This document shows positions 13,565-20,383 of a DNA stretch of 64,000 nt, in pieces. Under the pieces are notes generated by a model, which was not told the origin of the DNA, did not search any database, and saw only the letters and a program-made list of their open reading frames with translations. The stretch lies in sequence record LR588166.1, one strand, 5' to 3'. Position numbers and translations under genes: made by a program. Each line of letters begins with the position of its first letter. The first letter of the stretch is position 1.

Positions 13565-13613
13565 CTATGTAGTTAATGTTGTTAAAACGTATCTAAATAT
13601 CTTTGTCATTAGG

Positions 13614-16764: not shown

Positions 16765-17235
16765 ATGGCATATTTTTCAACTAAGAGATTTGGACCTATT
16801 TCCACTGGCCATCGTCAATGGAAAGATACGGGTCATTGCAGCAGAATACACGGCTACGGAAGAACAGTGAAGATTGTTTTTTCTGCTACTACATTAGATG
16901 ATAAATTGTGGGTAGTAGATTTTGGTGGATTGAAAGATTTCAGGAAATGGCTGGAAGAACAATGGGATCATAATGTTTTAGTTGCATCTGACGATCCCAA
17001 GTTAAATATCCTTAAACAAATGGAACAAGAAGGTCTAGTTAAATTAAATATAATGGATGTTAAAAAAGGCCATGGTCCCGGAATAGAAGGTTCATGTAAG
17101 CATCTGTTTGACTATTTGAATCCCATTATAGAAAAACAATCTGGCGGAAGATGTTGGGTCCATAGTATAGAAATATGGGAACACGAAAACAATTCCGCTA
17201 TATACGAAACATATAAGTCAACATTTAAAAGATAA
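16765..17235 (+). CDS. second QueD/PTPS-like protein
   Basis: GHRQW, HCSRIHGY, WVVDFGG, WDH, WEHENNSA. Confidence 0.85.
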   Translation: MAYFSTKRFGPISTGHRQWKDTGHCSRIHGYGRTVKIVFSATTLDDKLWVVDFGGLKDFRKWLEEQWDHNVLVASDDPKLNILKQMEQEGLVKLNIMDVKKGHGPGIEGSCKHLFDYLNPIIEKQSGGRCWVHSIEIWEHENNSAIYETYKSTFKR

Positions 17236-17238
17236 ATA
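17232..17238 (+). promoter_or_regulatory. late promoter core ATAAATA
   Basis: upstream of hsp20. Confidence 0.5.
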
Positions 17239-17318
17239 ACATTAGTATTCCATGAGGAATACTATACAACGAGTGCCTTATTGGGCTCACACTATATCTT
17301 GCGTAAAGGAGATTAAAA

Positions 17319-17750
17319 ATGCAAAAACATGTTATAATGTCATCTAACCTAGCTAATTATAGATATGCACTAGGTGCAACTGATTTACTTAATACTATTA
17401 CTAATGAACTTAGTAGCCAGAAGTTTCCTCCCCATAATTTGATAAAGAATGCAGACGGTAGCTATTGTCTTGAATTAGCTCTTGCTGGATATGATAAATC
17501 TGAGCTAGACGTTTATGTAGATAGCAGAGAACGACTGTTAGTAATAGAAACAAAACCGGAACGAATTTTTAAAACTGAAGTAGAATACGAACACAAAGGT
17601 ATTTCTAGTAAAGATTTTTCTGTCAAATTCAGGCTTGTAGACGATCTTATAAATATATCTTCGTGCGGTATGAAAAATGGTATTCTAACAATAAAAATTC
17701 AACCGCCGAGTCCTGCAGAATCACAACGAAAAGTAATTGATATAGAATAA
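17319..17750 (+). CDS. small heat shock protein Hsp20/IbpA-like
   Basis: FPPHNL, LELALAG, HKGIS, NGILTI; SD AAAGGAG. Confidence 0.92.
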   Translation: MQKHVIMSSNLANYRYALGATDLLNTITNELSSQKFPPHNLIKNADGSYCLELALAGYDKSELDVYVDSRERLLVIETKPERIFKTEVEYEHKGISSKDFSVKFRLVDDLINISSCGMKNGILTIKIQPPSPAESQRKVIDIE

Positions 17751-17761
17751 TGTTTACAAAT

Positions 17762-17785
17762 AAAAAGCTGGTATTCCAGCTTTTT
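17762..17785 (+). terminator. rho-independent terminator
   Basis: aaaaagctgg-tatt-ccagcttttt. Confidence 0.8.
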
Positions 17786-17801
17786 ATTTTTGCTATATAA
17801 C

Positions 17802-17829
17802 TTGACGACACTGTTTAAACATATATAAT
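17802..17829 (+). promoter_or_regulatory. sigma70-type promoter for clpS
   Basis: TTGACG-16nt-TATAAT. Confidence 0.55.
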
Positions 17830-17865
17830 AATGTGTATCAATTACGATCAACTTGGGATTTAAAA

Positions 17866-18168
17866 ATGACTGTAAAGGTAGCTAATAAAGTTGAAACTTC
17901 GTCTACTGTATTTCAACCTAAGAAATATAATGTAGTTTTTCACAACGATAACAAAACCACTATGGAATTTGTTATGCAATTGTTAGTATATATATATGAC
18001 TACGATGCATCTAGCGCATACAATACAATGATGGAAGTGCATGAACGCGGCGCAAAGATTGTAGGCAGCTATACAAAAGAAATTGCAGAATCGAAACAGT
18101 CTAAATCTGTTCAACTTGCTATTAACAACGGTTATCCCGATTTTAAAGTAACTGTAGAAGAATCGTAA
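17866..18168 (+). CDS. clpS: ATP-dependent Clp protease adaptor ClpS
   Basis: YNVVFHNDNKTTMEFV..L..MMEVHERG..G.YTKEIAE; start moved to the ATG at 17866. Confidence 0.92.
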   Translation: MTVKVANKVETSSTVFQPKKYNVVFHNDNKTTMEFVMQLLVYIYDYDASSAYNTMMEVHERGAKIVGSYTKEIAESKQSKSVQLAINNGYPDFKVTVEES

Positions 18169-18180
18169 TACAGCAAAAAC

Positions 18181-18200
18181 GGGGGTAGACACCTACCCCC
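18181..18200. terminator. GC-rich hairpin after clpS
   Basis: gggggtag-acac-ctaccccc, flanked by aaaaac and ttccc. Confidence 0.6.
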
Positions 18201-18212
18201 TTCCCTATTATA

Positions 18213-18219
18213 ATAAATA
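18213..18219 (+). promoter_or_regulatory. late promoter core ATAAATA
   Basis: 23 nt upstream of the sod start. Confidence 0.6.
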
Positions 18220-18242
18220 AAGCATATAGGGATATAAGAATT

Positions 18243-18791
18243 ATGAATGATTCCATAAAGAAATACATATCTATTGCAGAAGCTGCATCGTCCGTAAAGA
18301 AAATTCCTATCCCGTATTCCGTAAGTAGTCTTAGTCCTACTTTCTCTAAAGATTTAGTAGAACTACATTACGGAACATTATATTCTAATTACATATCTTC
18401 AGTAAACAAAGACCCCAGTAATAAATTTTCATTTGCAGGTGCATACCTGCATGGGATTTATTTTAGTCAATTTACTGATTCTCAAAAAAGATATTCTCCT
18501 TCCGGGATATTATTAAAAGATATAAAATCTAAATTTACTTCATTTTCTAAATTTAAAAATGAGGTTATATCTGCATGCATGGATGTTCATGGTTCTGGAT
18601 GGATTTATGTTTCTAATACCCTTGTAATAAAGGAAATCCCAAATCATGAAGTAAGAGACGATATATTCTTACTTATTGATTGTTGGGAGCATGCATATAT
18701 GCTCGATTATAAAGCAGACAAGAAGTCATACTACGAGAATATATGGAATATATTTAATTGGGAATATCTGGAGGGTATGTATTCTCAATAA
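18243..18791 (+). CDS. sod: Fe/Mn superoxide dismutase with N-terminal extension
   Basis: ELHYG, YLHG, GSGW and IDCWEHAYMLDY (His/His/Asp/His ligands). Confidence 0.9.
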   Translation: MNDSIKKYISIAEAASSVKKIPIPYSVSSLSPTFSKDLVELHYGTLYSNYISSVNKDPSNKFSFAGAYLHGIYFSQFTDSQKRYSPSGILLKDIKSKFTSFSKFKNEVISACMDVHGSGWIYVSNTLVIKEIPNHEVRDDIFLLIDCWEHAYMLDYKADKKSYYENIWNIFNWEYLEGMYSQ

Positions 18792-18810
18792 ATAACTTCG
18801 GTGAATACTT

Positions 18811-19095
18811 ATGAGAACTAAAAAGCATTGGGATGAATGCCTCTTTTCTTTATCTTATGAAACTGCACAACACATGGCATTTGAATTAAAGGAATTTGCC
18901 AAGCAAGCAGGATTTAATCCAAACGGTATTAAAGTATTGTCGAAAAAACAAATTCATAAATATGTAAAAGCTGATGCAGCTATTATGTGGGGCGAAGGTC
19001 CAGAGTGTTGGGCTAATTCGTTATTGTTTAAAGATTTATTAGGAGTATACGTATCTACCTATAAGGGTAACACAATTCTATTTCATGACAGGTAA
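18811..19095 (+). CDS. hypothetical protein
   Basis: 94 aa; ATAAATA at 18788. Confidence 0.6.
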   Translation: MRTKKHWDECLFSLSYETAQHMAFELKEFAKQAGFNPNGIKVLSKKQIHKYVKADAAIMWGEGPECWANSLLFKDLLGVYVSTYKGNTILFHDR

Positions 19096-19104
19096 TGCAA
19101 ATAA

Positions 19105-19398
19105 ATGATAGATATACACACTATTGGAAAAGATTACACAGTAATCAATAAAAGAAATGGTGTATCTGTAACAGTTAGTGTGGTATTTTATAAAGATATT
19201 TTACGCAATATAAAACCATATTCTATAACTCAACCTATAGACCAATATGTAATTTATGTTTGTGAACAAATTAAACCAACTAAACCATATCACTGGCATA
19301 CTAATTATTCGGAAACTATTAACTTAGAACATTTAATAAAAGAAACATTACAAAATAATAAACAATTATTAATAATACAAGATTTATATACAGACTGA
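19105..19398 (+). CDS. hypothetical protein
   Basis: 97-aa ORF in operon. Confidence 0.6.
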   Translation: MIDIHTIGKDYTVINKRNGVSVTVSVVFYKDILRNIKPYSITQPIDQYVIYVCEQIKPTKPYHWHTNYSETINLEHLIKETLQNNKQLLIIQDLYTD

Positions 19399-19465
19399 TA
19401 TGGATAGCTTTTGCAACAAGAAGCTTGAAGATCGACACAAACGCATGACGTAATAAGGATTATAA

Positions 19466-19693
19466 ATGAAAACATTTGATTTTACTTTTGGAGTATATAG
19501 AGCTAAACAGTGTGAATGGAAAGGAAATTCTAAAACACAATGCGGAGCAAAACCTATAGAAGGAAAAGCATATTGTTTAGAACACTTTAAAAAGGCATAT
19601 GTTAATATTTCTGAAGAAATGTTAGATAAACAAACAGAAGCACAGTTAAAGAAATTAGAAAAAGAAATGCCTGTGGTAATCGAAGAAGAGTAA
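19466..19693 (+). CDS. small Zn-binding protein resembling the GcrA C-terminal domain
   Basis: CEW...CG...G.AYCLEH...AY; SD AAGGA. Confidence 0.6.
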   Translation: MKTFDFTFGVYRAKQCEWKGNSKTQCGAKPIEGKAYCLEHFKKAYVNISEEMLDKQTEAQLKKLEKEMPVVIEEE

Positions 19694-19724
19694 AAACAAT
19701 CCCCGCAATTGCGGGGATTGTTTT
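19693..19724. terminator. bidirectional terminator (perfect 32-nt palindrome)
   Basis: aaaacaatccccgcaattgcggggattgtttt. Confidence 0.85.
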
Positions 19725-19738
19725 ATAAGGAGATAAAA

Positions 19739-20383
19739 TTGGAACTTAAAACAAATGAACAGAAATCTATAATAGGAACATTTGCAACTTTAATGTTAAC
19801 TAGAATATTTGCAGCCGCTGGCGCATATTTAGCATTAACTATGCCAATTCTTAATATGAATTTACTTGTGTGTATATTTTCATATTTTGCTATAATGTTT
19901 ATTATAGATTGTATTAGAACAAATGTGTATGTGTCTATTGTAGGGAGTGTATTTTTATTATTTTGGCAAGGAATAACATTAGGGAATGGATTAACTGCGT
20001 TACTAGGGGAAGTAGCGCCATTATTAGTTTTAGTTATGTTTACTATAAGTTCGTTTTTATATATGTTTCTTTGTGCAAACGCAATTATGTCAAAAAACAT
20101 TTTTAGTTTCGCGTCGTCATTTAATGTTTCTATAGCAATGACTTTGCTTGTGACCATAGTAATGTCTATACTATTAGATCTATCAGTCAGTTATTGTATA
20201 GGCAGTATGATAATAAACGTGATTAATTGCGTGGTAATACTCAAAACATTAGAAGATTGTATAAACGAAAAATGTGAAAATATATCTATGCAAAAACTAT
20301 CTACAACTGTAGTATTATTTTGGTACGATACAATAATGGAGTCTATAGAGAAACTTTTAAAACTATTTACATATAAGCGGTAA
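19739..20383 (+). CDS. multi-pass membrane protein, YccA/Bax inhibitor-1-like
   Basis: about 6-7 hydrophobic segments; C-terminal VLFWYDTI..IEKLLKLF resembles the BI-1 LYLD.INLF..LL.LF motif; TTG start after AGGAG. Confidence 0.6.
   Translation: MELKTNEQKSIIGTFATLMLTRIFAAAGAYLALTMPILNMNLLVCIFSYFAIMFIIDCIRTNVYVSIVGSVFLLFWQGITLGNGLTALLGEVAPLLVLVMFTISSFLYMFLCANAIMSKNIFSFASSFNVSIAMTLLVTIVMSILLDLSVSYCIGSMIINVINCVVILKTLEDCINEKCENISMQKLSTTVVLFWYDTIMESIEKLLKLFTYKR

Follow-up and report, generated by a model that had tools for sequence, protein, structure and literature searches.

A leader-bearing Fe/Mn-type superoxide dismutase in the stress gene block of PA5oct-like Pseudomonas jumbo phages

Viral superoxide dismutases and packaged phage proteins

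That a virus may encode its own superoxide dismutase (SOD), make it late and carry it in the particle is an established idea. It derives from the chlorovirus PBCV-1, which packages the late Cu/Zn SOD A245R, and from vaccinia virus, of whose virions A45R is a component. These are proteins of eukaryotic viruses, of the Cu/Zn type and without a leader for a prohead protease, and for them packaging has been demonstrated. For the entry of accessory proteins into a phage head the reference is T4, whose protease gp21 cuts after L/I-x-E. Its capsid targeting sequence is about 10 residues long, ten residues sufficing for targeting, and one of its proteins, Alt, carries a C-terminal propeptide. The leader of the T4 internal proteins IPI, IPII and IPIII is common to several cargo proteins, and its cleavage has been shown.

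The gene considered here lies in a 64,000-nt stretch of record LR588166.1, called the window below. Its product recalls both precedents, being a viral SOD which, like the T4 internal proteins, begins with a short amphipathic leader ending in I-A-E followed by Ala, in a phage that has a gp21-family protease. A preliminary description of the window had proposed that the SOD is packaged, to be ejected with the DNA or to protect it in the virion, and had known of no described case. The last statement holds for phages but not for viruses at large, in view of PBCV-1 and vaccinia virus; how the proposal itself fares, against the thought of an enzyme at work in the infected cell, is the main concern of what follows.

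The source phage and its relatives

Positions 17000-20000 of the window are those of Pseudomonas phage vB_PaeM_MIJ3 (LR588166.1, 79000-82000; 100% identity), and PA5oct with nine further relatives matches the same part at 98.7-99.6% identity. The MIJ3/PA5oct group consists of jumbo myoviruses of 284-288 kb in the genus Wroclawvirus. One of its members, Paride, has become known as a killer of dormant P. aeruginosa, and the growth of PA5oct needs the host RNA polymerase. Since the SOD protein is 100% identical across all eleven records (MIJ3, PA5oct and the relatives), published PA5oct data are directly applicable to that of MIJ3. In GenBank the gene is labelled sodB in MIJ3 and Callisto and 'hypothetical' in PA5oct, and the literature searched on PA5oct, MIJ3, Paride and Callisto yielded no discussion of it. 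Fe/Mn SODs encoded by phages are rare among cultured phages: within the phage collection, credible matches came from the PA5oct group, from a single Vibrio jumbo phage and from two records of uncultured 'Bacteriophage sp.'.

Fold and active site

The open reading frame at 18243..18791 on the + strand (MIJ3_00102 'sodB', PA5oct EST35_0261; 182 aa) is, on the joint showing of Pfam, alignment to solved SODs, an AF2 model and GenBank annotation, a real Fe/Mn-type SOD. The C-terminal domain Sod_Fe_C (PF02777) is matched at 1.2e-21 with 77.1 bits, the cut-off being 20.9, and Sod_Fe_N (PF00081), matched over profile positions 6-40 only, falls just short of its cut-off of 27.0 with 26.9 bits; a PHROGs search with the protein matched no family. 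The AF2 model, for which 20 homologues were used, reaches a mean pLDDT of 90.2, contains both helices of the N-terminal domain and compares with solved Fe/Mn SODs at TM 0.80-0.85 despite a sequence identity of about 24-30%. Among solved structures, those that match the protein best are the SOD of P. gingivalis, a cambialistic enzyme (1ues, 1qnn), archaeal SODs and human MnSOD.

The preliminary description credited the protein with all four metal ligands, and the alignment bears this out. H42, H70, D146 and H150 (codons 18366-8, 18450-2, 18678-80 and 18690-2, spanning 18366..18692 on the + strand) fall on 1ues H27, H74, D157 and H161, which we take to be the metal ligands of that enzyme, and the gateway Tyr, equivalent to Tyr34 in E. 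coli numbering, is present as Tyr50. The four ligand positions vary little or not at all in the family, throughout which H42, Y50, H70, H135, D146 and H150 are conserved together with the motifs GSGW and WEHAY. With cellular Fe/Mn SODs (1ues, 1qnn, human MnSOD) the phage protein thus shares the two-domain fold, the four ligands, the Tyr34 equivalent and a C-terminal domain recognizable at 1e-21. It differs from them by some 15 additional N-terminal residues, by a helical hairpin from which the 1ues alignment shows about 13 residues to be missing, by Leu46 where His30 (E. coli numbering) would stand, and in the second sphere, where the Fe-type Gln is absent and the position of the Mn-type Gln is taken by His135. 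A His at the second-sphere Gln position occurs in active archaeal SODs. Taken together, sequence and model suggest that the protein is probably active as an enzyme, with Leu46 and His135 counting against that reading.

The N-terminal leader

Residues 1-17 (18243..18293, + strand) form an extension that is apparent from the 1ues alignment, the homologues and the AF2 model, and which cellular SODs are without. Residue 21 of the phage protein aligns to residue 6 of 1ues, leaving about 15 extra residues, and AF2 predicts a helix at residues 3-16 with a pLDDT of 56-65. The preliminary description was therefore right in seeing a leader ahead of the SOD fold, albeit one modelled as a helix of low confidence. 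A mis-called start codon was considered and rejected. The next Met after the first is M113, and homologues preserve the leader as protein sequence, from which it follows that the leader is translated. A peptide YISIAEAASSVK would mark the intact, uncut N-terminus.

All 20 close homologues (180-184 residues, 39-66% identity) have the extension, with a consensus of approximately Φ-R-x-Φ-Φ-x-L-Φ-E in which the basic residue is nearly invariant. A profile search of the full library for the SOD family gave 61 cluster representatives below 1e-30; most full-length members carry the leader, and among 43 distinct family leaders 40 contain [LI]xE, ending at residue 9-18. Leaderless members (L016:3989-4558 among them) include P0027-P0031 and P0049, which have C-terminal extensions of about 80-200 residues instead, and NVP2275O_049, the SOD encoded by Vibrio jumbo phage 2.275.O, which has about 20 extra residues at its C-terminus. 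The Vibrio protein and the metagenomic P0002-P0064 otherwise resemble the PA5oct-type SOD in belonging to the short-hairpin subfamily, at 33-66% identity, and in their S21/ClpS neighbourhood; what sets the Vibrio SOD and P0027-P0031 apart is the absent leader and the C-terminal extensions. A comparison of homologue N-termini, which the preliminary description had called for, accordingly upholds conservation without making it universal, and a leader found in most but not all of its members can be considered a conserved yet dispensable module of a viral SOD subfamily which, to judge from the alignments, is a distinct one marked by that leader. Pfam searches on the extensions of longer relatives gave a weak DUF5872 match in one leaderless, C-terminally extended member of the subfamily and one AhpC-SOD fusion, the more distant P0102, in which a peroxiredoxin (AhpC/TSA) is joined to a SOD; neither bears on packaging.

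That the leader ends in an IxE site of the type used in T4 is correct as far as it goes, since I-A-E ends at residue 13 and Ala follows, but such a site is no commoner than chance among virion proteins. An [LI]xE ending at residues 5-15 is found in 17 of the 90 virion-listed PA5oct proteins and in 45 of the 291 non-virion ones (p = 0.51), and no enrichment in the virion-listed set was seen in any N-terminal position window. The baseline of near-N-terminal [LI]xE in PA5oct proteins is about 15%, and the non-virion proteins that have it include DNA polymerase, ClpA and homing endonucleases. When a PSSM of the family leader was run on 410 PA5oct N-termini, the SOD scored 14.2 bits and the next best, a protein not virion-listed, 8.6. 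The SOD alone being above 10 bits, the leader is not an address tag common to other PA5oct proteins, and here it departs from the T4 leader, as it also does in a hydrophobic register that differs from T4 residues 4 and 7.

Some PA5oct proteins have starts that resemble the leaders of T4 gp24 and the internal proteins more than the SOD leader does (gp380-gp382, gp150, gp205, gp237 and gp238). The adjacent gp380, gp381 and gp382 (L012:10677-12300) begin with the similar decapeptides MRLNEINLIE, MKILEFNLTE and MKLSEICILE, and gp380 and gp381 are each represented by 12-13 virion MS peptides. Several more of the virion-listed proteins open with a stretch of 9-11 residues that closes on [LI]xE, such as MKINDIITE, MKIKDILVE and MFLKDVKITE.

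Promoters, terminator and transcripts

Upstream of the SOD gene is clpS, encoding a ClpS adaptor (17866..18168, + strand; GenBank, MIJ3 and PA5oct), behind a sigma70-type promoter TTGACG-N16-TATAAT (17802..17829, + strand) that agrees with the consensus at 11/12 positions. Between the two genes a G+C-rich hairpin (18181..18200, + strand; 8-bp stem with 6 G-C pairs, ACAC loop, z = -4.0) was found where the preliminary description had placed one as an insulator of the SOD promoter, and in the tables of the PA5oct paper it is the predicted terminator after EST35_0260 (clpS). At 18195 MIJ3 has A and PA5oct, in all four RNA runs, G; the change converts a U-A pair of the hairpin to U-G, with the stem kept and the -35 hexamer of the next promoter untouched.

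The SOD gene had been assigned an ATAAATA late promoter of its own. The heptamer is there (18213..18219, + strand), and its spacing of 23 nt to the SOD ATG is typical for the late-type motif of PA5oct. It overlaps, however, the -10 box of a near-consensus sigma70-type promoter (18186..18214, + strand; -35 TAGACA 18186-18191, N17, -10 TATAAT 18209-18214; 11/12 positions), the -35 hexamer of which sits within the hairpin and which the PA5oct authors list for EST35_0261 with p = 1.7e-9. The late motif itself is a weak variant. Genome-wide, ATAAATA occurs within about 100 nt upstream of 20/90 virion-listed genes against 17/370 other genes (Fisher p = 1e-6), its usual position being 19-37 nt 5' of the ATG and the heptamer being usually preceded by G. 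In the form GATAAATA, the late-type motif enriched before PA5oct virion genes, 22 of 32 copies are promoter-placed, among them those 19-37 nt before the start codons of many virion genes, tail sheath, neck, gp151 and gp159 included (L007-L012). In the form AATAAATA, with A for G, which is the SOD copy, 8 of 50 PA5oct copies are so placed, and of the variants with T or C 4 of 63. PA5oct gp137 is a gp55-like late sigma (phrog_12791, 8e-82; phrog_234, 1e-17; T4 gp55 by phmmer, 8e-6), and this together with the motif enrichment indicates that a T4-style late system probably exists in PA5oct. The promoter table of the PA5oct paper contains sigma70-type sites only, with no entry for the late-type octamer. 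A further late-motif octamer in the window is at 18788-18794, ahead of the gene at 18811, and RNA depth is up after 18788 in three runs.

A second stem, pairing 18202-18208 with 18226-18232 (7 bp; 18202..18232, + strand), is part of the predicted minimum-free-energy structure and includes the Shine-Dalgarno-like AGGGA of the SOD gene (18228-18232). By this model the stem could form in clpS read-through transcripts and not in those from the SOD promoter, and translation of the SOD may depend on which promoter made the mRNA.

The RNA data are four PA5oct RNA-seq runs in the form of assembled contigs with contig depth and without time labels. Depth is very high over clpS (17870-18203) and drops about 5- to 100-fold after the hairpin; contigs nonetheless bridge the hairpin into the SOD gene, so that clpS read-through exists, and the SOD gene is covered at moderate depth in all four runs. 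No depth jump at the SOD promoter was resolvable in these assembled contigs. Converting the older gene numbers of an earlier preprint ourselves (offset about 76-79, which makes the SOD approximately gp337), we place the SOD gene in a block described there as middle and as becoming stronger late. The depth over clpS is the top one of its 5-kb stretch in two runs, at 13,600 and 209,000 or about 50-100x its neighbours there, and in the other two the depth of ibpB is above that of clpS.

Virion proteins and the head protease

EST35_0261 is among the 93 proteins detected by ESI-MS/MS in CsCl-purified PA5oct virions, from gel slice 12 with 3 peptides and 31.32% coverage, as the published table and a GenBank note record. 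The same list has FolE (13 peptides, 80% coverage), both RNR subunits, ThyA, QueD, ClpP, FtsH, ligase, RNaseH, MazG and the prohead protease, and with so many metabolic enzymes in it the detection of the SOD is not specific. The coverage amounts to 57 residues from the 3 peptides, and combinations with or without the N-terminal peptide both fit. As the gel slices track full-length protein masses closely, the size of the SOD is of some relevance: it is most abundant in slice 12 (21.0-23.1 kDa), for which the uncut protein of 21.0 kDa is a better fit than the cut one of 19.5 kDa. The latter would suit slice 13 (18.0-22.0 kDa), and because the two slices overlap this evidence is weak. The molecular weights that the published table gives under 'SDS-PAGE' were discarded as evidence, each being 110 Da times the number of residues (182 x 110 = 20020).

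PA5oct gp152 is a gp21-family protease (phrog_207, 2e-58), and the order of the head genes, portal-gp150-gp151-protease-gp153-MCP, is T4-like; from its sequence gp153 may be read as a coiled-coil scaffold. The capsid protein gp154 (L007:35850-37037) has L-x-E sites at residues 7, 19 and 42, the L-V-E at residue 42 presumably resembling the T4 gp23 site. Its virion MS coverage of 97.47% and its position in the 42-45 kDa slice give no sign, in this data set, that a propeptide of about 40 residues is removed, and the capsid protein apparently keeps its N-terminus, with no T4-like propeptide shed. The protease gp152 is in virions at full-length size. A search of the literature on RaK2-like phages for cleavage sites found none.

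Gene neighbourhood

The SOD gene is outside the head module, in a proteostasis/stress block which in PA5oct-like phages comprises QueD, ClpX, S21, Hsp20, ClpS, SOD, FtsH, ligase and ClpP. Much of this is seen again in 200-kb-class metagenomic phage contigs, where the order is PTPS-ClpX-S21-...-Hsp20-ClpS-(SufBD-like)-SOD-...-ligase-...-RNase_T-ClpP-Fe-S_biosyn and the SOD starts 8 nt after the SufBD-like gene, and in Vibrio phage 2.275.O, with S21-ClpS-like-...-SOD. The contigs of the leaderless relatives P0030 and P0051, at 1.7-2.7 kb, are too short to show gene context.

The gene directly upstream of SOD in the metagenomic relatives encodes a protein of 345 residues that matches the SufBD core weakly (L003:8955-9992; L004-L006 alike), and after their clpP comes a PF01521 Fe-S biosynthesis gene (L003:20261-20552; L004-L006 alike). 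From such gene content, the block may have a part in protecting or rebuilding Fe-S clusters. Pfam searches with the small genes downstream of SOD, with gp276 and with the SufBD-like gene of the relatives gave sub-threshold matches only; one was that of the 94-residue protein just 3' of SOD (18811-19095) to Tox-MPTase3, at 21.2 bits with a cut-off of 25, and is probably not meaningful.

What the enzyme may be for

The reading we consider most likely, and likely on balance in its own right, is that of an intracellular antioxidant enzyme belonging to a phage stress module. Most clpS transcripts would stop at the hairpin, and the SOD would be transcribed at a moderate level, in part by read-through and in part from its own sigma70 promoter, which overlaps a weak copy of the late motif. 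The enzyme would then act in the cytoplasm of the infected cell, removing superoxide while the host's gene expression gives way to that of the phage, and its activity would protect phage replication and metal or Fe-S enzymes. The N-terminal amphipathic helix would be intrinsic to this SOD subfamily and may serve docking or oligomerisation, and the SOD in purified virion preparations would most likely be carry-over of abundant infection-phase enzymes. Were this so, control of oxidative stress would join the host-like proteostasis functions of these phages. Counting against it are the presence of the SOD in CsCl-purified virions, the ATAAATA at late-gene distance, and a conserved helix, detached and of low confidence in the model, whose L/I-x-E in 40/43 leaders suits a cleavable targeting peptide too.

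It is on these same features that the packaging proposal draws. In it the leader acts as a capsid targeting sequence of the T4 type by which the SOD docks on the prohead's scaffolding core, the gp21-family protease cuts after E13 and the mature enzyme stays in the head, subsequently to be ejected with the DNA or to guard the packed genome. PA5oct has a T4-like head module with its protease, as well as a late sigma like gp55; the leader, modelled as a separate helix of low confidence, has an I-A-E/A site at residue 13, T4 targeting sequences being about 10 residues long, the motif 23 nt before the ATG is at the right distance, and the protein is in the virion list. Nor do the C-terminally extended relatives contradict it, since T4 Alt has a C-terminal propeptide. 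Yet [LI]xE, with a baseline of 15%, shows no enrichment among the virion-listed proteins, no other PA5oct protein has a leader of the SOD type, and 3 peptides in a list with many plain enzymes are set beside a gel slice that fits uncut SOD, whereas for the T4 internal proteins cleavage has been demonstrated. The capsid protein itself, at full-length size with 97.5% coverage, shows no propeptide removal, the gene is in a stress/proteostasis block and not in a head or internal-protein locus, and its promoter is of the sigma70 type with a late motif that is without the preferred G. A metal enzyme would moreover presumably need unfolding and re-metallation after ejection. The site thus stands from the preliminary description, and the protease and the detection in purified virions, a published result beyond the reach of that description, favour its proposal; the inference of packaging is, in our estimation, unlikely to be correct. 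We are similarly doubtful of its extension to PA5oct-like and wider metagenomic phages, that they package active SOD by way of a family-specific propeptide removed by a gp21-type protease. Were it correct, an incoming genome would arrive with its own antioxidant enzyme, in what would be the first packaged SOD of a bacteriophage, and a leader that targets the head would be a natural case of a phage other than T4 delivering an enzyme as cargo, and a ready-made tag for the engineering of Pseudomonas jumbo phages.

For those inclined to look for the meaning of the leader inside the cell, it might be a regulatory or turnover tag read by the phage ClpXP/ClpS or FtsH, or a helix by which the SOD docks on a partner, the SufBD-like protein being one candidate, and as such would control the level or location of the SOD. 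The helix is conserved and exposed, some relatives are extended at the C-terminus instead, and clpS, clpX, ftsH and clpP flank the SOD gene in PA5oct and relatives; but adjacency is the only link, homology of the C-terminal extensions to the leader is unsupported, and we think this improbable. More improbable still is the thought that the protein is SOD-like but weak or inert in catalysis and serves otherwise, for instance as a decoy or in binding metal, after the fashion of some poxviruses. Leu46 and His135 would suit it, as would the N-terminal hairpin shortened by about 13 residues and the Sod_Fe_N score just under the Pfam cut-off. The family-wide conservation of all four ligands, Tyr50, GSGW and WEHAY, and a fold that matches active enzymes at TM 0.80-0.85, speak against it.

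Whatever the SOD does, its upstream neighbour, the strongly expressed phage ClpS adaptor with its near-consensus sigma70 promoter, deserves attention.
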